Shown: positions 7,171-64,000 of the stretch, one piece after another | How the letters are laid out: each line of letters starts with the position of its first letter | Numbering within the stretch: the stretch's first letter is position 1 | NCBI GenBank assembly: GCA_025786725.1 | Contig: JAHLTZ010000016.1 | Coordinates: forward strand, 62,001 to 126,000 | DNA length: 64,000 nucleotides | Direction: 5' to 3' | From: Syncephalis fuscata S228 | Taxonomy: Eukaryota > Fungi > Zoopagomycota | Translations under genes and position numbers: made by a program | The notes under the pieces: generated by a model | What the model saw: the letters and a program-made list of their open reading frames with translations, nothing else | The model's database searches: none | Told to the model about the DNA's origin: nothing

Positions 7171-9483
7171 ATGGAAGATCACGAAAAAACACCTTTACTA
7201 CCGAGTTATAATGACTCTCCTGCTACAGTAATTCCTATGCCATCAAATGAACACTTGCTCGACGATGACGACGACGACGACCAAGCCTCGGTACAATCGG
7301 TGGTGCCGATTCACCAGCCAAAGCCTATTTATCCAGCAGCAACGCCAATCAGTGCAGACCATAGTCGCAATTCGCCATCGCATCCTTCATTAGTAGGCGG
7401 CCACAATCCAGGTATTTTAGGAGGTGCTGGAGCAATAGCAACTCCTCCACCGCGTAACAATACGCCACGGCTACTGCGTCAACGAGATCGATTCCGCTCG
7501 AATAGACCGTCAGCTCGCAATGTATTCTCCTGTCTAGGCGTTACACTACTTATATTTTTCCTCTATCTTACAGTGACATCACTGATGCATCCACCGCCTA
7601 TGGGACCAGGCCGCAAGTCTGGTATTGATGTTGGTGTACGTCATATATTCGATGAAACATTAAATTCGCGGTAAGCTATGGCTAGTTATATAATAGAAAT
7701 TGCGTTAATTGGTTATAATAATAGACGTGTATGGGATCGATTGGCCGAAATGACTGATTTATATGGGCCACGTATTATTGGCTCAGAAGCATTGGAAAAG
7801 GTAAGTAAATATTTAATAATTTACAATGCTAATATGATATGTAGAGTATTGATTGGATGGTGACAATGATGGAAAGTGATAATTTAACTACAATGACAGA
7901 AGAAGTTGAGGTGATTTAATTAAATGGATTGATATTATAGTGTACTCTATTAATATTAATATTGACAATATATAGGTTGATTATTGGCAACGAAATGAAG
8001 AGTCAGCTGTACTTATTTTGCCCACTCGTCCACCTAAAAAACTGGCTATGCTTGGTCTAGGTGGATCAGTTGGCACAGGACCTGAGGGTATTGAAGCAGA
8101 AGTGGTTGTTGTAGATGATATTGCTCAATTGGCAACGATGGGCAACGATACGATATCTGGTAAAATTGTTCTTTTTGATACAGTTTGGAAGAACTATCAA
8201 ACAACGGTGCCTTCACAATCTCGCGGTGCTTTAGAAGCAGAGAATTATGGTAAATAGTAAAGTAAATAATAGTTTAATTAAATAGTTTTAACACTATTAT
8301 ATTGTTAGGTGCAAAGGCTGTACTTGTACGATCGGTTACTCCATATTCACTTGGAACGCCACATACAGGTCAGATGTCCCCATCGAGGTAATTAAACACG
8401 CCAAAACCTGATATCTAGTTAACGCTATATAATCTAGTATTCCAGCTGCAGCTATTACAACAGAAGATGCAGACTATATACGGCGAGTTTACAATCGCTA
8501 TTTAACCGCCCAAAATGACACCTCGCCATTCAAGGATGATTTTGTTGCACCTCGTGTTAAACTAATGATGGGAGCAACACTTGAGCCAAATGGACGCAAG
8601 ACACGTAATATTATTGCAGAGGTAAAAGGACGAATTCATCCAGAAGAAGTGGTTATTATTAGTGGCCATATTGATTCGTAAGTAATAGAATAGACGTACA
8701 ATGACTTTTGCTAACACATTAATAGCTGGGATGTGGGATCTGGTGCGGTCGATGATGGTGCTGGCTTTTTTATTGCTTGGGAAGCATTGCGTGCTATATC
8801 CACCTATGCTATGGCACCACGTCGAACAAGTAAGTATAATGCACTAGATCTATAGCATTAGAAGCTTATTACTCTATAGTACGTGTTGTTGGCTGGACGG
8901 GCGAAGAGACGAAGCAATGGGGAGCCCATGCTTATATGAATAGCCATAAAAAGGAAATACCCAATCACGTATTTGCTCTTGAATCGGATACTGGCGTGTT
9001 TACACCATGGGGTATTATAGCAACAGGTACCGACCATTCAATGGCTATTCTTCACGAAGTCGGTGAACGGTTCCTCAGTGGCGTGGGAGGCGGCAATGTT
9101 AGTAGAACAGGTATGTAGCTATCTAATAGATTACGGCCATGCTAATGATCATAATTAGATGTAGGGGAAAGTGATCTGGGTCCATTAGCCAAAGCTGGTG
9201 TTCCTTGTGCCGGTTTCTTTAGTATAGATCCTATTACACGTAATGCGCCCACTACAGCTGGTGTGGAAACCTATTTCCGCTACCATCATTCGTAAGTTGC
9301 ATTGTCCATTAAACGATCGCCTATTCATTATGCAATGATGATAGAGAAGCCGATGTCGTTTCGGTATTAAAACCGGAAGAATTGGCTGAAGGGGCAGCAA
9401 GTATAGGCACATGGGCCTATGTAGTGGCCGAGATGGAGGACCGTTTGGACCGTAACGAATCTGATGAGGTGCAGGAATTATAA
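7171..9483 (+). CDS. CPQ: Carboxypeptidase Q-like M28 metallopeptidase, type II membrane topology, multi-exon
   Basis: RLAEMTDLYGPRIIGSEALEK, YWQRNEESA, MLGLGGSVGT, PA domain, SGHIDSWDVGSGAVDDGAG, WTGEE, ALESDTG, YFRYHH; TM segment near 7530-7590. Confidence 0.88.
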
Positions 9484-11622: not shown

Positions 11623-13376
11623 TAAGAATACCGCGTTCCCAAGAGAAAATAGGATGAGAGATGGTGCGTGTGCTTTACGAGTATTTAAACAATTACATTA
11701 GACACATAGAATAACGAATTCAAATCGCTATACGTAGCAGCTGCTTTTATTGATATTCAGAAGCTCAAAAATGCTGCGCGTATATACAATAAGATAAAAA
11801 AAAGAATTGCTTTATTATAATTTATATGGCTGTTGAGCAGTGCAATATGTAACTACGCTGTTTAAACCAATGTTTAGCTTTTTAGTAAAGTTGAAAGAAT
11901 AGTAAGAAAGATGGTGTTTGTTAAATAACAATAGAAAAGAAGTAAATAAGCATTATATTATTAATTGGCCACGTGCTAATATATTCGTTATTTAGACTGA
12001 TGGCTATATTATGATGATAATTGTCTTAGTAATGTTTGCAATTACCACATTCCTGTGGCGTAAAATAATGGATAAAAAGATATAATATTAGTCACAATTA
12101 TAACAATAACTTTACGTATAATCAAGCAAACTGCATGATATTTTGCACAAGCATGCACATGACATACAGACAACTATTAGCGAAGTATACCGTAGTTGTG
12201 TTGCGGTATAGACCAATGGTTGCGATAATACGCTAATAAATGTGCAAAAATGGCCGTTTTTTGCCATTTATGGCTTGTGTAAACAAAATACAGCAAAATG
12301 ATTGCTGGATTCGAGTTGTCCATGCTTAGTTATACACATTGGTATGTTTTATAGAACAATGATTTTTGCAAAAATGTTGGCCAAAAATGCAATTTACGTA
12401 ATATTTGCTAACAAAAACCTAAGTTATATGTATATCAGTAGCATAAATTGCCACTTTACAGCAATATTTCTGCATATTAAATTGCCATTATGCTTGTTTT
12501 GGCGTTGTGAATGCTTTAATTTACTTTATGCCAATTTGATTTTTAATATTAAAATCTTTAAAATCGTATAACTTTAATTGCTTTTGTTAGCAAATATTAC
12601 GTAAATTGCATTTTTGGCCAACATTTTTGCAAAAATCATTGTTCTATAAAACATACCAATGTGTATAACTAAGCATGGACAACTCGAATCCAGCAATCAT
12701 TTTGCTGTATTTTGTTTACACAAGCCATAAATGGTAAAAAAACGGCCATTTTTGCACATTTATTAGCGTATTATCGCAACCATTGGTCTATACCGCAACA
12801 CAACTACGGTATACTTCGCTAATAGTTGTCTGTATGTCATGTGCATGCTTGTGCAAAATATCATGCAGTTTGCTTGATTATACGTAAAGTTATTGTTATA
12901 ATTGTGACTAATATTATATCTTTTTATCCATTATTTTACGCCACAGGAATGTGGTAATTGCAAACATTACTAAGACAATTATCATCATAATATAGCCATC
13001 AGTCTAAATAACGAATATATTAGCACGTGGCCAATTAATAATATAATGCTTATTTACTTCTTTTCTATTGTTATTTAACAAACACCATCTTTCTTACTAT
13101 TCTTTCAACTTTACTAAAAAGCTAAACATTGGTTTAAACAGCGTAGTTACATATTGCACTGCTCAACAGCCATATAAATTATAATAAAGCAATTCTTTTT
13201 TTTATCTTATTGTATATACGCGCAGCATTTTTGAGCTTCTGAATATCAATAAAAGCAGCTGCTACGTATAGCGATTTGAATTCGTTATTCTATGTGTCTA
13301 ATGTAATTGTTTAAATACTCGTAAAGCACACGCACCATCTCTCATCCTATTTTCTCTTGGAAACGCGGTATTCTTA
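11623..13376. repeat. Palindrome P1: arms 11623-12416 and 12582-13376 (~795 bp), 165-bp spacer
   Basis: Right arm is the reverse complement of the left arm with only a few substitutions and one indel seen. Confidence 0.97.
12112..12887. mobile_element. 776-bp foldback/MITE-like core, copy 1 (~305-bp inverted arms plus spacer)
   Basis: Near-identical to 16020-16795; non-coding; no transposase or TSD identifiable. Confidence 0.55.
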
Positions 13377-14299: not shown

Positions 14300-15268
14300 A
14301 TGTCACTTTTTGAATCCGCAGCAGCAGCTTTACTTGCTCGCGCGCACAGAGATAGCGATGCGCTGCTTTCTCTGTCATGTGCATCTACACGGCAAAGAAT
14401 CGTCCTGCTGAGGGATTCTTTACCTCCTGAAGAGCTATGGCAGTGGCAACAAGAAGATTCCGCGACAGCAAACTGTGATGATACGCAGGCGCTTATTGAG
14501 CACTTATTCACACAGTCTTCAGTAAACGTATCGAAAGTACTTTCGCCAGCAACATTCCGAATAATCGATGGCGCCACACGAAGAGCACGTTTACGTTTTG
14601 CGGTAAAAAAGGTTGGCCAAATTAACAGCTCTCTTGCTGGCTTATCATATGAGTATTATATTATAATGGAGCGTGAGCCAGACGGTATATGGCGCTACTT
14701 TAATACTATTATTGAAAAGCATAGTACAACTATCAACGGAAACGACGGTAGTGCAACTAAATCAATAAAATCTGATTTATGGTTCGACTCTATTGGTATG
14801 GCAGAAGATGCAGCAAGACACGGAGGAAAGCCTGTAGGTACGGATGCTTTAACTACGGAAATAGCATTTGACAAACAAAATAACTATGTTGCCTATGGAC
14901 AACCGAGCATGTATGAAAACAACGAAAATGACGACGAGGATGACGACGACAATTATTGGGCAATGTACGATAGCAGCACGCCGGCCAAAGCATCGCTACC
15001 ATCTCGTGCCAATGTAGCTACTGAGGATGATTATTGGTCACGCTATGATGCTATTGACTCGCAAACACCTCCACCACGCAAAGATGGTGCTAAAGCAGCT
15101 CAAAGTAATGCGGCCAAACATGTTGTTCCTGATAATTCATCGCGTCAGCTATCAAGTATTGGTGACCCACGAGACGTACTACTACAGAATCTTCGTGTTT
15201 TACGACACATGGCTGAACGGATGGGCATTAACAAGAATGAATTCATTGAAATGGCACGACAAGCTTAA
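14300..15268 (+). CDS. Conserved fungal-type hypothetical protein with acidic DDDxYWxxYD motifs
   Basis: Intronless 322-aa ORF; two D-rich YW..YD motifs; C-terminal LRVLRHMAERMGINKNEF helix. Confidence 0.7.
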   Translation: MSLFESAAAALLARAHRDSDALLSLSCASTRQRIVLLRDSLPPEELWQWQQEDSATANCDDTQALIEHLFTQSSVNVSKVLSPATFRIIDGATRRARLRFAVKKVGQINSSLAGLSYEYYIIMEREPDGIWRYFNTIIEKHSTTINGNDGSATKSIKSDLWFDSIGMAEDAARHGGKPVGTDALTTEIAFDKQNNYVAYGQPSMYENNENDDEDDDDNYWAMYDSSTPAKASLPSRANVATEDDYWSRYDAIDSQTPPPRKDGAKAAQSNAAKHVVPDNSSRQLSSIGDPRDVLLQNLRVLRHMAERMGINKNEFIEMARQA

Positions 15269-15488: not shown

Positions 15489-17328
15489 TTTATTTTATTA
15501 AACTTATTAAAAATATTATTATTTGGTGGTCAAATAACTATATTTAATATTCACACAATTGGACTACATATTTGTTCTATTGAATATGCGAATGGGCGGT
15601 AAGTTATATTGGCCATCAAATTTACTATATGATAATTCTATTAGCATGATTGTTTTGTGTAAATATATCTATTGCAAATATTGTCACATCGTTACATTTG
15701 CACAACATTGCAATATTGATACTTGCATTGTCTTATTCTCTAGCTTTCTACAGTTCCATGCCGATCTATTTGGCGCTGAATAGCCCAATAATCAATAATC
15801 ATAAATGACCAGTCCAATAAATATAACCATTGCAGAAATGTAATAGCTATATTTCTAACAGCTGTGTTTTAACAGAATACGCTATTTTCATTTATAATAC
15901 CTTGAAATGACGATAAACATTAATTTACAAATTCAGACGTAAAACCATTGCGTCCATGTTATAAAGTATTCTAATAGCAATAATTTACTTAATTAAACAT
16001 TATTAAGGTTGTGCATAACTTACGTATAATGAAGCAAACTGCATGATATTTTGCACAAGCATGCACATGACATATAGATAGCTATTAGCAAAGTATACCG
16101 TAGTTGTGTTGTGGTATAGACCAATGGTTGCGATAATACGCTAATAAATGTGCAAAAATGGCCGTTTTTTGCCATTTATGGCTTGTGTAAACAAAATACA
16201 GCAAAATGATTGCTGGATTCGAGTTGTCCATGCTTAGTTATACACATTGGTATGTTTTATAGAACAATGATTTTTGCAAAAATGTTAGTCAAAAATGCAA
16301 TTTACGTAATATTTGCTAACAAAAGCAATTAAAGTTATACGATTTTAAAGATTTTAATATTAAAAATCAAATTGGCATAAAGTAAATTTAAAGCATTCAC
16401 AACGCCAAAACAAGCATAATGGCAATTTAATATGCAGAAATATTGCTGTAAAGTGGCAATTTATGCTACTGATATACATATAACTTAGGTTTTTGTTAGC
16501 AAATATTACGTAAATTGCATTTTTGACTAACATTTTTGCAAAAATCATTGTTCTATAAAACATACCAATGTGTATAACTAAGCATGGACAACTCGAATCC
16601 AGCAATCATTTTGCTGTATTTTGTTTACACAAGCCATAAATGGCAAAAAACGGCCATTTTTGCACATTTATTAGCGTATTATCGCAACCATTGGTCTATA
16701 CCACAACACAACTACGGTATACTTTGCTAATAGCTATCTATATGTCATGTGCATGCTTGTGCAAAATATCATGCAGTTTGCTTCATTATACGTAAGTTAT
16801 GCACAACCTTAATAATGTTTAATTAAGTAAATTATTGCTATTAGAATACTTTATAACATGGACGCAATGGTTTTACGTCTGAATTTGTAAATTAATGTTT
16901 ATCGTCATTTCAAGGTATTATAAATGAAAATAGCGTATTCTGTTAAAACACAGCTGTTAGAAATATAGCTATTACATTTCTGCAATGGTTATATTTATTG
17001 GACTGGTCATTTATGATTATTGATTATTGGGCTATTCAGCGCCAAATAGATCGGCATGGAACTGTAGAAAGCTAGAGAATAAGACAATGCAAGTATCAAT
17101 ATTGCAATGTTGTGCAAATGTAACGATGTGACAATATTTGCAATAGATATATTTACACAGAACAATCATGCTAATAGAATTATCATATAGTAAATTTGAT
17201 GGCCAATATAACTTACCACCCATTCGCATATTCAATAGAACAAATATGTAGTCCAATTGTGTGAATATTAAATATAGTTATTTGACCACCAAATAATAAT
17301 ATATTTTAATAAGTTTTAATAAAATAAA
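15489..17328. repeat. Palindrome P2: arms ~15489-16324 and 16491-17328 (~835 bp), 166-bp spacer
   Basis: Arms are reverse complements with few differences; mirrored ORFs 15559-15783(+) and 17032-17256(-) translate identically. Confidence 0.97.
16020..16795. mobile_element. 776-bp foldback/MITE-like core, copy 2 (spacer inverted relative to copy 1)
   Basis: Spacer 16325-16490 is the reverse complement of 12417-12581; arms differ from copy 1 at about 8 positions. Confidence 0.55.
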
Positions 17329-18271: not shown

Positions 18272-18898
18272 TTAGCAACTAATGACGCGATCATGCTTAG
18301 CAATAACTTTTTTGCCATCAGAAGATACAAAAGCTTCATACTCATGCATTGGAAGAGATACGAGAAACTTCCATGCAGGCTCAATAGATATATCCTCAAC
18401 ATGATAATATGTTTTTTCGCCAAATGCACGTTTAGTGCGGTCAGGATTAGTAAAACTTTCTGTTTGCATATCCTCAATGGACTGTTCTCGTCTGTCACCT
18501 TCTACAAGTTGAATATCAGCTGGATCTTGGCCAAGATGACCGGCAAGTGTTTTAAAGGCATCACGGATGGATACATATCGTGGCGATGCCAGACTGGTGG
18601 CAATGTCTCCGTGGAAAAATCTATCCTCATATGTACATACATGATTGTTTCTGTCAACGTGTACCCGAATGCTAGTATTCTCAATAGGTGTCCCATTTAG
18701 CACCTGTTTTAAATCTACATGGGTTACATCCATTCCACTTGACTTGTAATGGCTTAGTACAATGTAGTCATCCTGTTTAACGCCAAGTATTTCATGCGTA
18801 AAAGCCAAAGCTACATCCAATGGACTTCCGGCCGATGCAAATCGCGCACCATCTCTTTGAAGCGTCTCCGAGGTGACGGCAGTTTCGTATTTAACCAT
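18272..18898 (-). CDS. Stand-alone fungalysin (M36)-type propeptide protein (FTP + PepSY-like); no catalytic domain
   Basis: SHYKSSGMDVTHVDLKQVLNGTPIENTSIRVHVDRNNHV (FTP-like) and YEAFVSSDGKKVIAKHDRV (prodomain end); stop follows; no HEXXH. Confidence 0.7.
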   Translation of the reverse strand: MVKYETAVTSETLQRDGARFASAGSPLDVALAFTHEILGVKQDDYIVLSHYKSSGMDVTHVDLKQVLNGTPIENTSIRVHVDRNNHVCTYEDRFFHGDIATSLASPRYVSIRDAFKTLAGHLGQDPADIQLVEGDRREQSIEDMQTESFTNPDRTKRAFGEKTYYHVEDISIEPAWKFLVSLPMHEYEAFVSSDGKKVIAKHDRVISC

Positions 18899-31001: not shown

Positions 31002-33271
31002 TTAAGATGAAGTGAAAAGTAATTCGGTGTACTTGGGAATGGGCCAGATCTTATCGGATACGCGATGTTCAAGGAAATCGGCACTGGCACGGACCGCGGC
31101 CATCAATGGGAGAATGCGTTCACAAGCAGCGTGGCTTTGAGCAGCTGCCTCTTCAATCGCCGCCACCTCCTTCGATACTTCATCAAGCTCGGCCGTATCC
31201 TTTTGCAGCTTAGCGATGAATGGTGCCAATTCGTCAAGAATAACACGCTCTGGCATAAGTTCGCTACCAATAGTGGTAAGAGCGGCACAGGTTTCGGCCA
31301 ATGTCTTGCGGTATTCGAAGGCCGCTGGCAATACCATCGTGTTGATCATCGATAGCAAAGTACCTACTTCAATAAGCACGTCTTTGGCGTAGCGTTCGTG
31401 GAGAATGTGGTAACGTGAATGAAGTTCAGATTCGTTAAATACCTTCTGTTTAAGCAGCATATCACGATTGACATCAGCCAATAGCTGTTCAATGGCTACT
31501 GGTGCATTGCGAAGGTTTAGCAGGCCACGCTTTTCAGCCTCAACGACCCATGATTCGGAGTAGTTGTCGCCTTCGAAGCATACTGCTCGGCTGCTAGCAA
31601 TAAACTTCTTGATAACGGCCAATTTGTCAGCATCAGTTGGGTAGGGGCGGTCACCCATCTGTTCGCGCAACGCAGCAGATACTTCAGCAAGCGATGAAGC
31701 AACAGCTGTGTTAAGTAGCGTTACTGGGAAGGATGGCGACTGTTTGGAACCAACAGCACGGAATTCAAACTTATTGCCAGTAAAGGCGAACGGTGAAGTA
31801 CGATTACGATCGGTAAGATCACGGGCAATGTTAGGCAGTGTTGATACCTTCACATCGAGTACACGGCCACCAAGCTTGATGGTTTGAATCTCTGGACGTG
31901 AAAAGTTCTTTACTGGACGTGACTCTTCAATGCTGCGCAATACTTCGGTTAAATGCTCACCCAAAAAGGCAGAAATAATACCGGGTGGTGCTTCATTAGC
32001 ACCAAGACGGTGGTCATTGCTGGCCGATGAAATACCAGCACGCAATAGACCACCATGGACGTGGACGGCGTGAAGGATGGCCACCAAGAAGAGTAAGAAG
32101 CGGTAGTTGGTCTCTGGCTTCTCTGTTGGGTCGAGCAAGTTCTCGCCACGATCGGTAGACATGGACCAGTTACAATGCTTGCCACTGCCGTTAATACCGG
32201 CAAATGGCTTTTCGTGGAACAAAGCCTTTAGCTTGTGGCGATGGGCAACCTTGTGGATGGCATCCATCGTAAGCAAGTTGTGGTCGACGGCCAAAACAGC
32301 CTCTTCGAAGATGGGTGCAACTTCAAACTGAGCTGGGGCCACTTCATTGTGGCGTGTCTTGAGTGGTACACCAAGCTTGTAAAGCTCAAGTTCAACCTCA
32401 CTGATGGCCGATAGCACACGCGATGGAATCTTACCAAAGTAATGGTCTTCAAGCTGTTGATGACGTGGCGGCAAGTTGCCAATCAATGAACGGCCACAGA
32501 TCTTTAGATCAGGTCGAAGTGCATACAATGCACGATCTACCAAAAAAATTCCTGCTCAGTACCTAGTGTAGTAAACACTTGGTTTACAATGCATGGGTGG
32601 CCGGGTGGAGCTGGGTCCAAAAGGTTCAATAGAGTGCATGCATTACGCGATAGAGCTTCACTGGAACGTAATAGCACAGTCTTCTCGTCAAGTGCGTCAC
32701 CGTTGTAGGAAATGAACACAGATGGAATGTAAAGCACAGCAGTACCGTTGACTTGCGGCTGAATGAACATTGGGCTGGTCGTGTCCCAAATGGTGTAACC
32801 ACGCGCCTCAAAGGTAGTGCGCATACCGCCAGAAGGAAAGCTAGAAGCATCCGGCTCTGACTGCAGCAATTCTGAGCCGTGGAACGTATCAATAGCGTGT
32901 ACGCCTTCACCCAAGAATGACGTATTCTTCAATGCCAAAAAGGCATCGTGCTTTTCAGCAGTAGTATCGGTTTGCGGCTGGAACCAGTGAGAGAAGTGGG
33001 TAGCACCACGGTCCATGGCCCAAATACGAACGGCGTGGGCTACGGCATCGCTAGTGGCTTTGTCGAGTGTTTGACGCCCACGCATTTGTCTTAAAAATGA
33101 CGCAAATACCGATTTGGGCAGCGCGTTGGCCATATCCTTTAATGTAAATACATTACGGCCGTATAATTCCGATGGATAATATGGCTTGCCATCGGGGCGT
33201 TGTGGGAACGCGCGGATAGTATGGTCGCGCGATACCGAGGCAATAATGGCATTTTTACGTTGATCCGCCAT
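31002..33271 (-). CDS. glnN: Glutamine synthetase type III, intronless; split by an apparent 1-nt deletion at 32542-32548
   Basis: ATHFSHWFQP, AEKHDAF, EPDASSFPSGGMRTTFEARGYT, EQEFF/LVDR, HNEVAPAQFE, HEKPFAGINGSGKHCNWS, HRLGANEAPP, DRNRTSPFAFTGNKFEFRAVG. Confidence 0.94.
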
Positions 33272-37100: not shown

Positions 37101-39330
37101 ACGGTTACGGACAAGCAATGCAATCTTGACATCAAGATCATTAAGAATCAATTCAGTTTGGTGATTTTCTCGAATCTTTTTCACAGCTTGTTGACGTAAA
37201 CGCTCCAATTCTACACCATAAATCATAAATAACGTGTTGTATGGAATATAATAGCCATTACTTACCAAGTTCATCTTCAAAGTCTTGTTCACTATCATCC
37301 AGTAAATGAACAAAGTTCTTCATGGTGTGGATAGGTGGATTTTCACCAAAAGCTATTATAGAATTAGTATTAAATAATATCTCGTAAACAGTCGAATGAC
37401 TTACTTAGATTTCGATAAGCCCGGTTGGCCAATTTAGCCCGGAACAGGCTTTGAATCTTTACAACCTTATCAACATGGCATATATAGTGTTCTTCTTGTT
37501 CTCGTTGTGCTTTGCGTACTAATGCACCACGCACCAAAGATTGTATCTGTTATGACAATTAGCTATATGTGCATGCATTGTCTATCTATATTTCACCACT
37601 GTCTACCTTAATTGCTGCCTCTTCTTCCTCTTCACGCTGCTGTCTCATTTTTTCAAGACGCTGACGTGCCAAAAGACCACGTGCCTGTGCTTGTACGCGC
37701 ACAACCAAATCATCATGTTGGTGCAAATCTTCTTTTCGAGCAGTCATTAATTTGCGTGCCTTCTGACCTCTAGTCAATGCTTGTAATTGAACAACCATAT
37801 TCTCTTGGCGACGCCATGCTGCTTTACGTGCCTCTTCTTGTTGACGCGCCTTCTGGCCTTTGGCCAATGCTTGTAGTTGAACAACCATATCTTCTTGACG
37901 ACGCCATGCTGCTTTACGTGCCTCTTCCTTTTGACGAGCCAAATAGCCACGTGCCAATGCTTGCAAGCGTTCAACATCAAACGATTGTTGCTTCAATGTC
38001 TCCAATTGACTCGTATGTTGTTGTCGTGCCAAATAACCACGTGCTAATGACTGTAGATTGACAAACTGCATTTCTTGTTGTTTTATCTCATTTTTGCGAT
38101 GCAATTCCTTTTGACGCGTTAAATATCCGCGAGATAGGGCTTGTAGGTTGATTAGGTCGCCCATACGACCCTTCCAATTCAATTCCCATTCTAATATATG
38201 TCAGTAGTCAATTGGTCAGATTAGTTACTATTTACCTTCTTCCTCAGATAATTCCGGCTCTGGTTCTGGTTCTTTTAATTCTCGCGACAATTGACTACCA
38301 ATATTACTGAATGCTGGCATAGCAATTTTAGACAATGCCAACTCTTTCTGCGTGGCCAATAGCTCAGCATCTATCAATCATTCAAATTGATATATTAGTC
38401 GACTATTATAGCCACGTATTAATCACTTACCCGTAAATTCAAGTTTACCAACTAAATTCTTAATATTAGGAGCACGATTTCTACGGGCTAATAAATGACT
38501 AATAAGTATATCCATAGTATTAATTATTTAATTATATTACTATTTAATTGTAGATTAATTACCTAAGAGCGTGTATACAATAAATAACCTTGGGGATGTT
38601 TTTTTTATCGTACAAGTCAGTCAATTCAAAAATAAACGACTAAAATAATATTAATACATTCATTAGTATACCAATTATAGTATATATCTATACATCATTA
38701 TTACCTCTGGCAATCCAATTTGTCTAATACCACGAAAAACATGATTTGCATTATCTGAATGACGAAATTGTAATTTAGCAGCCTATTAATGATCAGTTAT
38801 TAACGATTAGTCTTAATTATTACTCAATCACATATTTCTACATTTGTATTTACAAAACACTTTTTACTCACCTCAAAAATCTTTGGCACACAGTCTGGTT
38901 CAAAATGACGAATCAACTTGGCCAAAATCACACCATTTCGTAACTGTTCATCAAATGTGACAATGGGCGGCAATTCTTCATGAATACACGATTCAATCCA
39001 TCTATTAATCATATTGTAATTCGTATTTAACATACAACTAATTTATTCTATTTAATACTTACTCTTTGGCTTCACCAATATGACATAAATACTCATATGC
39101 TTGAAGACTTTTGCGTTCAAAGTCCATCCATGCACTTGGTCGGAGTAGTTGTGACTCACGTCGTCCACGATAGTCATGCTTTTGTAGCTTGATTCTACCA
39201 TGCATGCCTGTACAGTCCCGTATCAGTAAACCCGTTCACGCTACAACCACAAAGGCCATTTTTACTTACCAGTTACATCCTCGGCATCTTCAATAGTAAA
39301 GTTAAGGTCTTTGGGCAATTCAGGCTTCAT
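34150..39330 (-). CDS. IQG1: IQGAP (CH domain, IQ repeats, GRD, RasGAP_C); many exons, 5' end uncertain; apparent 1-nt deletion near 36850
   Basis: YEYLCHIGEAKEWIE, LRNGVILAKL, LYDKKNIPKVIYCIHAL, QALARGYLAR repeats, YYRYINPAI, FGSYVYSADKLYQKGVL, VNVNLLVFLINKKFY. Confidence 0.93.
37760..37965 (-). repeat. 90-bp tandem coding repeat (30-aa IQ units) in IQGAP
   Basis: caatgcttg recurs at 37775, 37865 and 37955; EEARKAAWRRQE(D/N)MVVQLQAL duplicated. Confidence 0.85.
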
Positions 39331-56532: not shown

Positions 56533-57329
56533 TTACATAGTGTTTATAAACAAAAGTGTTAATACGGTAGAAAATAAAACAGTAGACCAGAGCCATTGGT
56601 GGTAAATAGTCTGGATAGGTAACTGAAGTAGACCATGGGCAGCTGAAGACTCGCTGTTGCTTTTTGCGATGACTGCATTAGCGTCAAGATTGGATGGTTG
56701 TGTTGCTTTATTGTTTAGTTGTGTCTTTGTAGTGCTGTTGGTCGTGGTAAATGCTGCTTTTGTTGCTGTAGTGGGCTTTTTATTGCTGTTGTTATTACTA
56801 TTGTTATTACTGTTGTTATTACTGTTATTATTACTGTTGTTACCATTATCGGTATTGCCATCGCTTTTAGGCTGTACTGGATCTTTGAATGCAAAGGTTA
56901 CCGTACCTTCAACTGGTACATCGCCATCTGCATTGTCTACTAAAAAGCATGGAATTTGAGTGGTATTGGCTACTTTTGTTGGTGTTAGCTTGCCAATTAC
57001 GCAGTGGTTAATGGCTTGCCTGGAGGAGCTACACAAGAGTTGGGGCTGTCGTAGCGAATTTTAAATTGTGTTTTTTGATCTTCAGCTCGTCGATTGATCG
57101 CGTAGGAATAAACCTCAGAAGTTACAAGATACACTGCTTTAGGATATCCTTTAACTGTGGTATAGTTGTAGGCTGCATACTGGTAGATGTCGTTTAGACA
57201 GCCGCCAGAGAGAAGGTGAGGGCCTATTTTAATTTGAGAAAAGTTTGGCGCAGTACTTTCTTGAACTGTTTGTCCTTTAGTGCCAACAATGGCCAATACC
57301 AATAATATACAAACAATGTAAGGGAACAT
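56533..57329 (-). CDS. Secreted, probably GPI-anchored Cys-containing protein with Asn-rich linker (apparent 1-nt deletion near 57000)
   Basis: Signal peptide MFPYIVCILLVLAIVGTKG; (NNNS)n stalk; SSAA then hydrophobic C-terminus; two ORFs join with one added base. Confidence 0.7.
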
Positions 57330-58371
57330 GCTAATGCAGGAATACGGAAATGCTAATGAGAAATGCTTCAAGAATATGCTTAAAGGTGAGTATGCTACGG
57401 GAAAGAAAAGAAAGTGCACCAAGGGATGACAATAGTTTGGCATAGCGGGTTTAGAAATTAGTGGCACGGCAAAGGATACACGCAAAGGTATAATGTAAAT
57501 ATGTCTATTTTTAGATAAATAGCATTTATAATAAAAGCTACAAATACCTGTATAATACTCGATTATCATAAAGGTATTATTTTGCACGCTCATATCCTCC
57601 ATCCAACTATATCGTTCATATTGTATACTGCTAGTATTATAGATCATTATAAGTTATACCAACTATACTCTATTCAGTATATGTTTCAATCCATTTTAAT
57701 TAATCCAGTTTGTGAGTTGTACACTCAGCCCAACAATTATTTATATTATTATACATTTTGATAGCTGCATGCTACTTTTAGGGATTGTACATTTATTGTT
57801 ATATATATATATTCGTTGCAGAGTCTGAATCATTGGTTTATTTTCTTTATTAAACTATCCATGCAATAGTAACGTATTGTTTTACAGCTACTCGCGCATA
57901 ACGACTAGTTAATACATATTAACAATGGATTACTAAATAGACTGAGCTACTTAGTATGTTGTTTATAATCAAAAAGTACAACTAATATAATGGAGCGTGA
58001 AAAGTATATTAGGTAGTGGTACATGTGCAACACGTTGCAAAGTATCTTATTAGTTTTAAAGTTTGCTAGTCACTGGATGCAAATCAATCATGGTCATAAA
58101 GTAGTAGGTTGATTACATATGATAAAAATAAATTGGCGTGTCTATTACTGAAAATTTGCATAGCTGAATCGATACAATCAAATGCAGAACTGGTAATGGA
58201 ATAATAAAATTTATTGATTAAAGGGGAGTAGACCGGGATATTGGCTGAGATTAGTATATGCCTGAATTAAACGGCAGTCGTCCAATAATCTTGATTTTTA
58301 AGTGTATATCTAGAATCTCTAGGACTAGCTGTCCAATTATGATTTCAATGTCAATGTCTTGAAACTACTGG

Positions 58372-60831
58372 TTATTCTGTGTTTATAATATAGGCAACCA
58401 TGCCATATAATTAGCATATAGATCATAATGGTTAATGCGACTTACCATCTATAATATAAATCATTAAGTATCCAATGGATAATGCATGTTTAGTGTTTAG
58501 TTAATTGGTATTCAATTCTACTTACCAACTGCTGGTAAAGGTTATTAGATACGGGGTATATTATATATGTTTAGTACATAAATGCTTATATGTAATCATA
58601 CTTACTCTCTATTAATGCAAGTGGTTAAGCACACAGTGCATGGTATATATTTAGCATATATTTAGACAGTGTATAATGCCACTTACTCTCTATTAGTACA
58701 AGTGATTAAATACAGCATATGACATATTTTTAGTGAATAGCTAATTAATATACAATAATATTTACCAACTATCAATATAGGTGATTTAACACACAGTGTA
58801 TGGCATATGCTTAGTTCATGGTTGATCAGTATATAATGCTACTTACTAACTAATGATTCAAGTTATTAAACACATGGTGTGTGGGATATAATTAGCGCTT
58901 GGTTGGTTAACATGAAATCCCACTTACACTCTATTAACACAGGTTATTAAAAATGCAGTGTACGACATATATTTAGTATATTGCTGATTAGTATACAATT
59001 TTACTTACCGTCTAATAATGAAAGTTGTTAAATAAAGGGTATATGGCATATATTTAATTTGTAGCTAATTAATATATAATATTACTTACCAACTAATCGT
59101 ATACATTATTAAGCATAAGAAAAAGAATATGTAATTAGTTTAGTGCATAGATGGTTAGTATACAATGCCACTTACATTCTATTAGCACAAGTTGTTAGAC
59201 ATAAGGTGCATGGTATATGTTTAGTGCATAGCTGGTTGATATAAAAGTTTACTTACGTTCTATTAACAAAGGTTGTTAAACATAAGATGCATGGAATAAG
59301 TTTAGCACATAGTAAAGCAATATATTGTTTCACTTACCAGCTATCAACGCAAATTATTAAACAGGCGGCGCATAGAAAACGCTTAGTGTATGATTAATTA
59401 ATATACAATACCACTTACTAACTAATGGTTCAAGTTGTTAAGCACACGGTATATGGCATATGTTTAATACATATCCAATTGATATATAATATTACTTACG
59501 ATCTATTAAAGCAATTTATTAAACACACAGTGTATGGGATATATTTAGTACATAGTTGGTTGATATACAATGTCACTTACCAGCTAATGATGCAATTTAT
59601 TAAATATTCAGTGTATAAATATATTTAGTATGTAGCTAATCAATATACGATGTTACTTACCAACTATTAGCACAAGTAATTAGACATAAGGGAAATGGTA
59701 TATGTTTAGTACATAGTTGCTTGGTATGAAATGTCACTTACGCTCTATTAACACATTAAACACAAAGCAAAGGCACATGTTTAGCGTATAGCTTATTAGC
59801 ATACAATGGCACTTACTGGCTATTAACAAAAGTTATTAAACATACCGTGTACAACATATTTTTAGCGCATAATGAAGTGATATGTAGCACCACTTACCAG
59901 CTATTAGCACAGATTATAAAACACAAGATGCATGGAAATAGTTAGTGCATATTTGATTGATATATAATATTGCTTACCAACTAATAGTTGGAGTTATTAT
60001 ATAAAAATGCACGGCATACGTTTAGTATATAGTTGGTCAGTATACAATGCCACTTACTAGCTATTAACAAGTTATTAAATACACGTGTGCATCATACTTT
60101 TAGTGCACAGCAAAGTAATATGTAATACCACTTACCCCCTATTTATACAAATGATTAAATACACGCGCATGAAAAATGTTTAATGTATATCCGAGTAATA
60201 TGTGATGCCACTTACTAACTAATGATTCAAGTTATTAGACACAAAATGCACAGTATGTTTTAATGCATATCTGATTAATAGACAATATCACCTACGCTCT
60301 ATCGACATAAGTTGTTAAATACACAGCGCATGACATATATTTAGCATATATTTAGCTAATTTGCAATGCCACTCACGTTCTGTCACTACAAGTTATTAAG
60401 CAAGGTGCATGAAAGACGATTAGTGCATAGTCGATTAATATACGATGCCACTTACCAACTAATGGTTTAAGTTATTAAAAATATATTGCATGACAGGTGT
60501 TTAATACGTAGTTGGTCAATATACAATGCCACTTACGGTCTATTAATGTAAATACAGCATATTAGTATTTCTGATTAATAATTGGTTTGTTCTTTTATAT
60601 TAAGTTTACCTTGAGATGTTAGATCTAATTTCAGCAATTTACATTACAAAACAATGTTTATCATGTTCATCATGTGTATGGCAATCTACATTGAGCATTG
60701 GAACAATGGTTCAAAATCACAACTTACCGACTAGTATCGCCATTAGTTAGCCATAATGTTAATGAGTATATTAATTTACGTATTTATTGCAGTTGTAACA
60801 TACCACGGATAAGGGCCGGCACAGTTTCCAT
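58372..60831 (-). CDS. Predicted micro-exon gene: exons 60831-60804, 60730-60728, 60624-60610, twenty-seven 3-nt exons (60539 down to 58446), 58376-58372; product METVPALIRVDLTSQDLEQLRAIAAKLADLTEQFDEFIEKIDE
   Basis: Every repeat unit has YAG-NNN-GT; in-order phase-1 join is stop-free, amphipathic and ends GAA-TAA at the next acceptor; no transcript evidence available. Confidence 0.75.
58441..60545. repeat. Diverged ~81-bp tandem array, 27 units (intron + 3-nt exon)
   Basis: (ac)ttac-NNN-cta anchor recurs every 75-86 bp with shared gttattaa, cac, tttagt and tacaat blocks. Confidence 0.95.
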
Positions 60832-63800
60832 TATAATTGTATTGATTACAAAAGCTATAATGAGCGGCGCAAACGACGGCTATAGAAAGCTTTGTGTTGA
60901 TACGACTTGTTAAAACAAGCAAACAAATGAAAAATAGAACGTGGCGATGATACCGCTGGTTATTTGTGTGTATCGAGCGGGCTATTTAAATCTGTGGTTA
61001 TACTGGGATATCAGTATATTGTAGTGTGCGGAATGTATTATCAATACTCAATGTAACCAATAAAGCACAGACAGTTGGTGGATTAAAGCACGTGCATATC
61101 GATAAATCAATGGCGCGATAATGTACTGCCAAGCCCTTATATCGTTTTTTTCTTTTACGCAAATGACGCGGCCCTATTAGCATCCAGTACGCATGTGGTA
61201 GGAATCCACCCATTGAGTTTTACAATTTTGTTACACAATTCGACTATGAAACGCAAACTGAATATATCAATTCCACGGAAAAAGGGATAATGTACCGCTG
61301 TGCCTTTGTTGCGTTTTCACCGATAAAATCAGTCTTCATTGTCTGCACGTATTTCGACTGTGCTTAGCATCGATGCAACAGTAGCGATAGTGCATTAAAC
61401 TGGTATTTTTTTTACAAATATGCACTGCTGTGTGTAAAGTAGTCATAGGCCATTAAATGGATGAACCAATCAGTATTTTTCATGATTTAATACATATTGA
61501 TATTGGGTTGGCTATAGGAACAAACAGTTCGTTTTAGCACTGTACCACCAGCTGTCGATACCAGCTCTATTTTTAACAATTAATTGATGGCTTCTGTATA
61601 ACACAGTTTTAATAGTAAAGTATTAAATTTATGTATGGATGCATCAATTGTTTTAACACAGTGTAAAAATACTAGACTGACCTGTCGGGTCGTCTCAGTT
61701 GTATATAATCAATCAAGAGTGTACAGGAGCAATGCAGGTTATATCAAGTTTTTTTTGAAAGCTAGAAAGCAGTCTTTATTAAGGCAAACAATAACATAAA
61801 GGTAAGACTTGTTTTAACTTGCTGCAGCCTCGACAATTCAACGAGGTGGTCGATTTTAAGCATGGGTATGAACGGAGACTGCGTTGTAAGGTAGGATGTA
61901 GCAATGAGTTACACCAATAAGCGTTTGCCGCCTAAAGATTGGTCCGGTAGACATCGGGTTCAGAGCCTCATTGACTTAGAAGGCAAGACTAGTAGTTGAG
62001 CTAGCATTACACCCTTTTGATGTCATAGCATTTTTTTTTCAAAAACCAGTGTTAATTAAGGGCATATCAGACAATGGCAGTCCCATTGTATAATGACTGA
62101 TTTGGGAATAACTCGATGAAGGTGGTTTATAATAGCTGCACACATCAAGATTGCACTAGACGAACGTGGAATCAGAATTTAGCAATGGTAAATCTCATCT
62201 ATATTCTTATCAGTATGCAAATCAATGACAACATACTATCATAGCCTTGAATGTTGAAATTCTTTATTAGAGCTTTTATTTCTTGGATTCTATGTTGTTA
62301 TAATTGCGTGCAAACTACTACACAGGCGGCACGCAAGCAATACAAATATGCACACGCAATCATCTTTTTTAGCAAAGCATTGATTTGCACGCTGCACTAT
62401 TTTATTGATATTAACAGTTTTGTGGCGCTGGCTTATTTGTGGTAATTATATCGATTGTAAACAGCAGAATCATGCATACTGCACATCCGTTCTGATTAGT
62501 ACTTGCTAAAACGACATTTTTGTCGCAGAAAACATGTTGCTATCGAAATAGATAGGTGTTGTGTTATTTTAACAAGCCTACCGATCATATAGATTTGCCA
62601 TAATTGCTATTATTTGAGAAAAAATCATTTTAACCACCATCGCTCACCACACTATCGTAATTTGTACACTTTCAAATAGTGTGAAATCGAAATGTTATGA
62701 CAAGTATAAATATCTATGCTATTGTCAAATCAGTCCGGACTGGACTGGAGGTTGTTTGAACAGCATAGATCAACTGTAATTATATTACAAATGCAAATTT
62801 GTTATAAAATCAAATATTCACAATACATAGCATGAAAGACAAGCGCTCATAATTGCTTTTTGGCGCCTTAAACTCATTCACTACTAATACGCTGCAATGA
62901 TTACGTAACATACTCTTAATTTATTGTTTACTCAATAGGTAGGCTTTACAAACCGACTTTCATCCTATATGTACCAACAAAGAACGATAACAACTATATT
63001 ACGTCGCCGTATCAAAAATCAATCTATTCCATGTGATATTTATGTCATTGATATGTTGGAAATGCATTGCGTTTTCTATTCTCGCACTTTTTGTGTGCTT
63101 ATCTTATCACACCTAATAAAAACCAAGAAATTACTCGTCAAGCTCGATTGTGTTGTCCAATTCTTAAATACGGCTAATGGTGCTAATAAACGTTTGTTGT
63201 AAGTTACCCGTTTAATTGCTGTTACTGTCTGTACACTGTATTAACAACTCAATAGGAATACAATATGCGAGTAAAACTGCGCTTTGGCACTTTTAGCAAT
63301 ATGGCAATGGGAAGCATATACTAAACGCAGCTAATTATTTGAGCCTCTATTAAATTTCCATATTTATTAAGCATAGGACTGAGCGGTGAGTGACATTAAT
63401 CATTGTTCATGTAATTTGTTCTATATAATCCGTATTTACTTGTCTATTATATATAATCAATATTGCTGTCTGTTTATTATTAAATAGTTTTCATGGATGT
63501 CAATCCATGTCGTTCATCTTATCATCGTGCATACTGTGACTCCATCACTAGTATTCACGCATTCTACTTGGTGATTCGTATCATTTGAGATTATTCATAA
63601 TTTATTGCCAAAACACTATTGATAAGCATATTTAGAAGCACATTCACAACCAAGAGAATAGTAATTAACTTCATGCTTATCAATTAATTAACGTGATTGT
63701 TTCATGTGGACAATCCGCACAAAAATATCAGTCCTTGGATCTCATTTTCTCGTTCACACTTCTCTTTCGCTTTCTCTTATATGCACACTTTACACTTCAG

Positions 63801-64000
63801 ATCTCTACATATACCAAAATACAGCTGTACTTTGGGTTACTACAGATCCAGTCTGATTTTTGCATTGTTTCCAAGATCACCGATCGCCAATAAACAACGC
63901 TCTTCACCTGTTCTCTCTTTCTCTTTCTATTACTTTATTGGGCTCATCGTTAAGTAGTGACATTCTGTCAAAAATACCATTTAATTTAGGTAAGTTTGGT

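Follow-up and report, generated by a model that had tools for sequence, protein, structure and literature searches.

A satellite-like stretch of the Syncephalis fuscata genome is very probably a gene with 28 exons of three nucleotides and a 43-residue coiled-coil product

RESULTS

The 81-bp array and its gene model

We asked whether a satellite-like stretch of about 2.5 kb in the genome of the fungus Syncephalis fuscata (Zoopagomycota), an obligate mycoparasite of Mucorales, is a neutral tandem repeat or a gene. The species does not cause disease in humans, animals or crops. The stretch lies in a window of 64,000 nt (contig JAHLTZ010000016.1, assembly GCA_025786725.1), to which all coordinates refer unless a contig is named. 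In the public record no gene is annotated in the gap between about 57330 and 64195, and no open reading frame (ORF) of at least 100 aa was found between 57650 and 64000. From what follows, the unannotated stretch is very probably a gene with 31 exons, 28 of them 3 nt long, that would encode a 43-residue coiled-coil peptide.

The initial annotation had described 27 consecutive units of the form YAG|NNN|GT on the minus strand between 60539 and 58446, each with a 3-nt exon, and we found the same triplets, coordinates and donors. The acceptor is TAG in 25 units and CAG in two; the donor is GTAAGT in 23 units, with GTGAGT, GTAGGT, GTAAGC and GTAAAT once each, and the period is ~81 nt. From the 5′ end of the array, the first bases of exons 1–14 are 60539, 60458, 60379, 60298, 60218, 60138, 60060, 59980, 59900, 59819, 59744, 59663, 59583 and 59502, and those of exons 15–27 are 59421, 59340, 59259, 59178, 59092, 59011, 58930, 58849, 58768, 58689, 58608, 58528 and 58448. 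When YAG-N(k)-GTRAG was counted for k from 0 to 15, the stretch from 58372 to 60831 gave 26 matches at k = 3 and 0–1 at every other k, and the rest of the window gave 2–9 matches per k. A pattern of three consecutive units matched 18 times in the window compared to 0 times in 100 shuffles.

The array (58446..60539, minus strand) contains 15 different triplets. Upstream of it, the predicted first exon (60804..60831; 28 nt) begins with an ATG that has A at −3, and its GTATGT donor places the exon end in phase 1; an ATG at 60743, also in phase 1, could open an alternative first exon. The second exon (60728..60730; TAG|TCG|GTAAGT) also has 3 nt but does not belong to the repeat, and the third (60610..60624; 15 nt, symmetric) has a weaker donor, GTAAAC, and contains a stop in the phase-0 reading. 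Downstream of the array, the last intron (58377..58445) measures 69 nt and the last coding exon (58372..58376) supplies two bases that finish the final codon, followed by TAA. Two further tandem acceptors in this intron, with the next exon starting at 58367 or 58364, would add 3–4 residues. Putative outer signals, both recognised as consensus matches only, are a TATA-like element at 60983..60990, ~150 nt 5′ of the ATG, and the first AATAAA past the stop (58210..58215), a possible polyadenylation signal. The full model spans 2460 nt with introns of 69–103 nt, and its 31 exons join into 132 nt of coding sequence (5% of the span), i.e. 43 codons without an internal stop, which bears out the joined model of the initial annotation. 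The length of 29 of the 31 exons is divisible by three, and most of the coding sequence lies in symmetric micro-exons.

The ~3 kb 5′ of this gene (60900–64000) contain no annotated gene, and the upstream open stretches that were scanned gave no Pfam match. On its other side, the neighbouring gene (56533–57329, minus strand) encodes a secreted, probably GPI-anchored protein and has a frame change near 57010–57020 relative to three intronless homologs, which the annotation spans with a 20-nt gap; this is either an assembly error or a recent pseudogene. Elsewhere in the window, two foldback-like elements (11623–13376 and 15509–17306) consist of long, perfect inverted repeats, whose arms measure 640 and 816 nt and are 100% complementary. 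The two elements are 96–98% alike in their shared parts and flank an unnamed 322-aa ORF (14300–15268), and L123, the locus of a paralog described below, holds a piece (9262–9436) that is 68% related to them. A 90-bp coding repeat at 37655–38143 is ordinary: it lies in an ORF with IQ motifs beside an exon for a RasGAP C-terminal domain (an IQGAP-like gene). The window also holds a propeptide motif of fungalysin (M36), a protease family typical of the genus Syncephalis, at 18272–18898 (minus strand), and a glutamine synthetase III ORF at 31002–32543.

Splice signals are conserved while the triplets vary

We compared the triplets with the 26 introns that separate them (58449..60536, 72–83 nt). 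The initial annotation had both triplets and intron bodies diverging; this stands for the triplets, which share 32% pairwise identity, while the intron bodies are still homologous to each other, with a mean identity of 63%. By column, pairwise identity is 0.29–0.36 in the exons and 0.63 in the intron bodies, and transversion differences are 0.43–0.52 and 0.12, respectively. In variability, the exon columns equal the least conserved columns of the intron bodies. The divergence of the introns consists mostly of transitions and their tree is star-like. GT and AG are nevertheless invariant in 26/26 introns, while body columns with a G or C consensus keep the consensus base in 57% of cases on average and none of them is invariant; given the divergence of the bodies, the rough chance of invariant GT/AG is about 1e-18. 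As judged from the sequence, selection acts on the locus as a substrate for splicing.

The conserved splice dinucleotides together with triplets that are more variable than the introns form a pattern that a neutral satellite does not give. In favour of a neutral 81-bp satellite with splice-like words arising by chance, Tandem Repeats Finder calls part of the array an 81-bp repeat, and CRISPR-like and satellite repeats fit the same three-unit pattern. We looked at the stretches that matched this pattern in other sequences (at least 120 metagenome, at least 120 prokaryote and 44 viral stretches) and counted a chain as an array only if it had 8 or more units and 6 or more different triplets. By this measure there were at least 16 metagenome loci, none among the 120 prokaryote matches listed and none among the 44 viral ones. 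The long chains in the controls were CRISPR-like or satellite repeats whose triplet is nearly fixed, with at most 3 kinds in prokaryotes, among the matches listed. In S. fuscata, in contrast, the triplet is the most variable part of the unit, the flanks are the most conserved part and a coding periodicity lies on top, so that a neutral satellite is hardly credible here.

The introns of the array differ from those of other S. fuscata genes, although the initial annotation had found their sizes and signals to match: the array introns are longer (median 78 nt) and their donors stronger (GTAAGT in 23/27) than in ordinary introns (median about 57 nt, GTAAGT in 13/54), the ordinary set being a rough reconstruction in which 4/13 genes did not resolve. 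A branch-point-like YTAAY begins ~20 nt before the 3′ end of the intron, where ordinary introns have a peak too. A second motif, (C/T)TAA, lies ~45 nt before the 3′ end; its TAA is invariant (26/26), more conserved than the usual branch-point position, and is kept in the last intron. This distal motif is possibly a distal branch point or an enhancer.

Could the introns themselves be the product, with the locus serving as a small-RNA host gene, a splicing sink or a timer and the peptide being incidental? The 5% coding share and the invariant internal TAA motif common to the introns would suit such a role. The array introns, however, have no RNA structure in common (no consensus pairs), and 7/8 introns folded singly did no better than shuffles, with z-scores mostly near or above 0; a search of the array introns against Rfam returned one chance-level match far below the gathering score. 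A snoRNA or mirtron host gene was rejected on these grounds (no Rfam match at the gathering score, no shared fold). As the exons in addition carry a clear protein signature, described below, we consider it very improbable that the introns are what the locus is for.

The arrangement of the introns also bears on their origin. The 5′ part of the last intron is a copy of an array unit (z = 4.7), the 3′ part is not, and introns 1–3 are not significantly related to the array introns. The half-copy and the unrelated introns 1–3 fit a tandem exon–intron duplication rather than a dispersed insertion of introns, and by its sequence relations the last intron is the edge of this duplication. Introners (introner-like elements) are homologous spliceosomal introns, too, but they are scattered insertions that share neither site nor phase, and many of them carry hairpins. 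The S. fuscata introns are, in the sequence examined, strictly tandem, all in phase 1 and unstructured, with a half-copy at the edge. A profile built from these introns was run against the window and ~21 kb from a second S. fuscata contig, and it matched only the 27-unit array. Introner-like elements were rejected because copies occur only in tandem within the array and there is no stable hairpin or set of consensus pairs. Co-ancestry of introns and their exons is weak (r about 0.1–0.16, P 0.02–0.05 in 2/6 tests).

The exons read as a heptad-coding chain in phase 1

We then asked in which frame the array is read. The initial annotation had held that the other two phases hit stops. For phase 2 this was correct (7 stops); in phase 0, on the other hand, the 27-triplet chain alone is open, and phase 0 is closed only by the stop in the 15-nt exon and by the absence of a phase-0 start. 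Codon log-likelihood favours phase 1 (+11.2 bits) over phase 0 (−6.4) and phase 2 (−48). In base composition, exon positions 1, 2 and 3 correspond to codon positions 2, 3 and 1, respectively, which scores +8.8 bits, against −10.8 bits for phase 0. Once the amino acids are given, the choice among synonymous codons agrees with that of the genome in phase 1 (P = 0.48) and misfits it in phase 0 (P = 0.004). The upstream ATGs with a usable donor end in phase 1, the exceptions being two weak phase-2 pairs, one within intron 2 and one within intron 3. Read in phase 1, each array codon is interrupted by an intron behind its first base, and none is contained in a single exon. The phase-0 reading of the array was disfavoured on codon log-likelihood and on the synonymous codon misfit.

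The phase-1 product is predicted to have 43 aa (4.9 kDa, acidic, pI 4.15) and to form an amphipathic helix. The array encodes residues 16–42, and the last ~27 residues contain four heptads with a core of L20, L27, F34 and I41 in position a and I23, L30 and F37 in position d. The hydrophobic moment of the phase-1 peptide has its maximum at 102–103 degrees (P about 0.002 against shuffles of the exon order) and the helix propensity is high (P = 0.0014 against the same kind of shuffles, of which only 54% are stop-free), though several statistics were tried on only 27 triplets and single P values should not be over-read. The weaker helical signal in phase 0 (P 0.01–0.03) is an expected echo because the frames share bases. 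Exons that lie 7, 14 or 21 units apart are 53% identical (reached in 0/2000 shuffles), while the introns at the same lags give P = 0.11, and no higher-order 7-unit repeat was detected in the array introns. As the lag-7 signal is present in the exons and not in the introns, the heptad sits in the coding bases and no visible 7-unit repeat of the DNA explains it; a duplicated block of 7 units whose traces have since vanished from the introns could partly produce such a signal. By codon usage and heptad periodicity, the locus is under selection as a protein read in phase 1. The earlier proposal of a functional micro-exon gene in this frame is thus well supported on the side of sequence, by splice-site conservation, hypervariable exons, codon usage and heptad periodicity.

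The openness of phase 0 raises a further question, whether the array is a relic, i.e. the formerly variable tail of a longer gene read in phase 0, as at the NACHT/ankyrin loci described below, that is now decaying behind a fortuitous upstream ATG exon. In phase 0 the chain is not only open but also leucine-periodic, 37 codons are open after the third acceptor, and the region from 61 to 64 kb is empty of genes. Decay is hard to reconcile, however, with 27/27 units that keep AG, GT and the 3-nt spacing despite an intron divergence of 37%. Moreover, the codon usage misfits phase 0, and neither a phase-0 start nor an upstream remnant was found 5′ of the array. We regard a relic as quite improbable and continue with the phase-1 gene.

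No signal peptide is apparent in its product, as a hydropathy check (which is not a dedicated predictor) gave no N-terminal hydrophobic core and a best 11-residue window of 1.03. From its composition, the peptide is most likely a small intracellular coiled-coil partner that would act as an adaptor or a competitive inhibitor, by self-association or by binding to a partner protein's helix. Its N-terminus may bear a faint likeness to Cdc26/Apc12, a tentative lead, and lacks the MLRR motif.

Similar arrays in metagenomes and in known systems

As the initial annotation had suggested, periodic YAG-NNN-GT arrays were sought elsewhere, and the metagenome scan brought up at least 16 further ones. Four are placed at L081:5233–7523 (plus strand), L043:5565–8174 (plus strand), L042:2828–4469 (plus strand) and on the minus strand of L122; the others are on contigs L025, L084, L076, L047, L038, L054, L103, L015, L069, L008, L093 and L120. 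Each has 8–50 exons of 3 nt with variable triplets, and in nearly all of these arrays the triplets are more variable than the introns (in L043, 0.30 versus 0.90). The loci are probably fungal, judging from intron signals and domains. The arrays of L081 and L043 come after NACHT exons and that of L122 after an ankyrin exon. The metagenome arrays are open in phase 0 with T or A at the third base, apart from a few stops at chain ends or in mis-parsed units. In phase 1 they are interrupted by stops, only L015 being open in all frames, and they give no comparable lag-7 signal. Among the matches listed, the S. fuscata array alone reads as phase 1 with a heptad. A separate run of ~24 or more 3-nt exons was seen at L110:2300–5300 (plus strand), on a contig with a BBE-domain ORF elsewhere; by eye its introns appear unrelated to one another, and it may therefore be a much older array.

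We also looked for the S. fuscata array in relatives, and the neighbouring genes led to no ortholog. A search with the HIG1 exon found, besides S. fuscata, a single syntenic metagenome contig of 2 kb. At the loci reached through the downstream neighbour, no array was found in L123 (a paralog), L124 (non-syntenic, GCA_003614755.1) or L125, a syntenic metagenome contig that stops 375 nt upstream of the neighbour gene. A homolog search with the ORF at 56997–57647 came back blank and has no bearing on longer or shorter kin.

The initial annotation knew of no array made entirely of 3-nt exons and had taken Schistosoma micro-exon genes (MEGs) as its reference. Neither point was sustained. In addition to the metagenome arrays, the NACHT-ankyrin (nank) NLR genes of Tuber melanosporum diversify through alternatively spliced exons of codon size (3 bp), of which they carry multiple or even tens (Iotti et al. 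2012, PMID 22289772, as cited in PMC4986451, PMC13449251 and PMC10197012), and as the citing papers describe them, these truffle arrays are the closest known system. Like them, the S. fuscata locus is a fungal run of tens of 3-nt exons (27 consecutive ones and one more) with canonical splice signals, and its repeating unit, like that of the NACHT/ankyrin loci L043, L081 and L122, consists of one triplet and one short intron that is homologous between units. Unlike the truffle genes as cited, it belongs to Zoopagomycota and has no NACHT, no ankyrin and no long exon of any kind. In contrast to the nank-like metagenome loci, it bears a heptad signal in its exon order and is in phase 1; those loci are open in phase 0 (the exon upstream of the L081 array ends in phase 0), the phase contrast being one with metagenome loci. 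An assignment as a nank gene was rejected because ORF, Pfam and annotation checks found NACHT and ankyrin domains absent.

Schistosoma MEGs, which are found only in Schistosomatidae, have exons mostly of about 15 nt (3–81), introns of 0.1–5 kb and signal peptides, and some are amphipathic (bioRxiv 10.1101/2023.06.21.545858). The S. fuscata gene resembles them in that a small protein comes mostly from symmetric micro-exons, whereas its exons are 3 nt, its introns are 69–103 nt and homologous, and it has no signal peptide. It was rejected as a MEG on signal peptide, exon and intron length and host. In the fungus Coprinopsis cinerea, isolated microexons of 1–3 nt number 27 in 26 genes, approximately one per gene (PMC12230235). 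Fungal spliceosomes thus do splice internal exons of 3 nt, and of the two species S. fuscata alone has a run of 27.

The truffle precedent raises the question of whether S. fuscata, too, includes its exons variably and makes a population of peptides of varied length and sequence, perhaps for interaction with a host or with non-self, the full-length form being one of many. The only published all-3-nt arrays are, as the citing papers present them, alternatively spliced, and all exons of the S. fuscata array are symmetric. Skipping leaves the frame stop-free in 27/27 single and 349/351 double skips, and in 98–100% of cases for skips of one to three exons; as nearly all such isoforms are stop-free, variable inclusion is possible. 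The mycoparasitic life of the organism would also give such peptides a setting. On the other hand, the heptad periodicity and the helix propensity hinge on the order of the exons and on their complete inclusion, a skip in phase 1 alters the neighbouring codon, whereas in the other arrays one exon stands for one residue, and the locus has neither a receptor domain nor a signal peptide. We therefore regard a diversifying role as unlikely, and because the exon order is constrained the S. fuscata locus is probably spliced constitutively.

DISCUSSION

We think it likely that the stretch is a real, unannotated gene that is transcribed from the minus strand, mainly into a full-length mRNA, and encodes a small intracellular coiled-coil peptide. 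Its origin may be pictured as follows: a unit of one 3-nt exon and one ~78-nt intron would have been amplified in tandem ~27 times, probably by unequal crossing-over, after which selection would have held every splice signal and remodelled the triplets. Transcription would start from the TATA-like site near 60990. Intron definition is established for fungi with short introns. As a 3-nt exon is too small for the factors of the 3′ and 5′ splice sites together, splicing here probably proceeds by intron definition, with each intron taken out separately. It would be aided by the near-consensus donors, by the unusual length of the introns and possibly by the distal CTAA, which could act as an enhancer or a second branch point. 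The selected product would take in all exons in order; for 75% of the mRNA to be full-length, inclusion has to reach ~99% per exon.

The S. fuscata array is a stand-alone, phase-1, heptad-coding variant, in Zoopagomycota, of the known but little-studied codon-sized microexon arrays of fungi, as far as the citing papers describe these. We lean slightly towards a more specific reading, in which a constitutively spliced stand-alone gene with every coiled-coil codon split by its own intron is a member of a widespread, unannotated fungal class of codon-exon arrays, of which the tails of truffle NLR genes are the sole described case in the literature as cited there. The metagenome scan suggests that codon-sized exon arrays are far more widespread than published: as one scan gave at least 16 further arrays, several of them ending NACHT or ankyrin genes, many others are probably present in the genomes of fungi. 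Such genes escape ORF finders, gene predictors and spliced aligners, and at the S. fuscata locus the annotation is blank. With 27 consecutive 3-nt exons, the locus offers a compact natural test of the spliceosome, i.e. of the order of intron removal, the rate of skipping and the distal branch-like motif. Moreover, it would illustrate a route to a new protein, in which a one-codon exon is amplified in tandem and selection then acts on the triplets.
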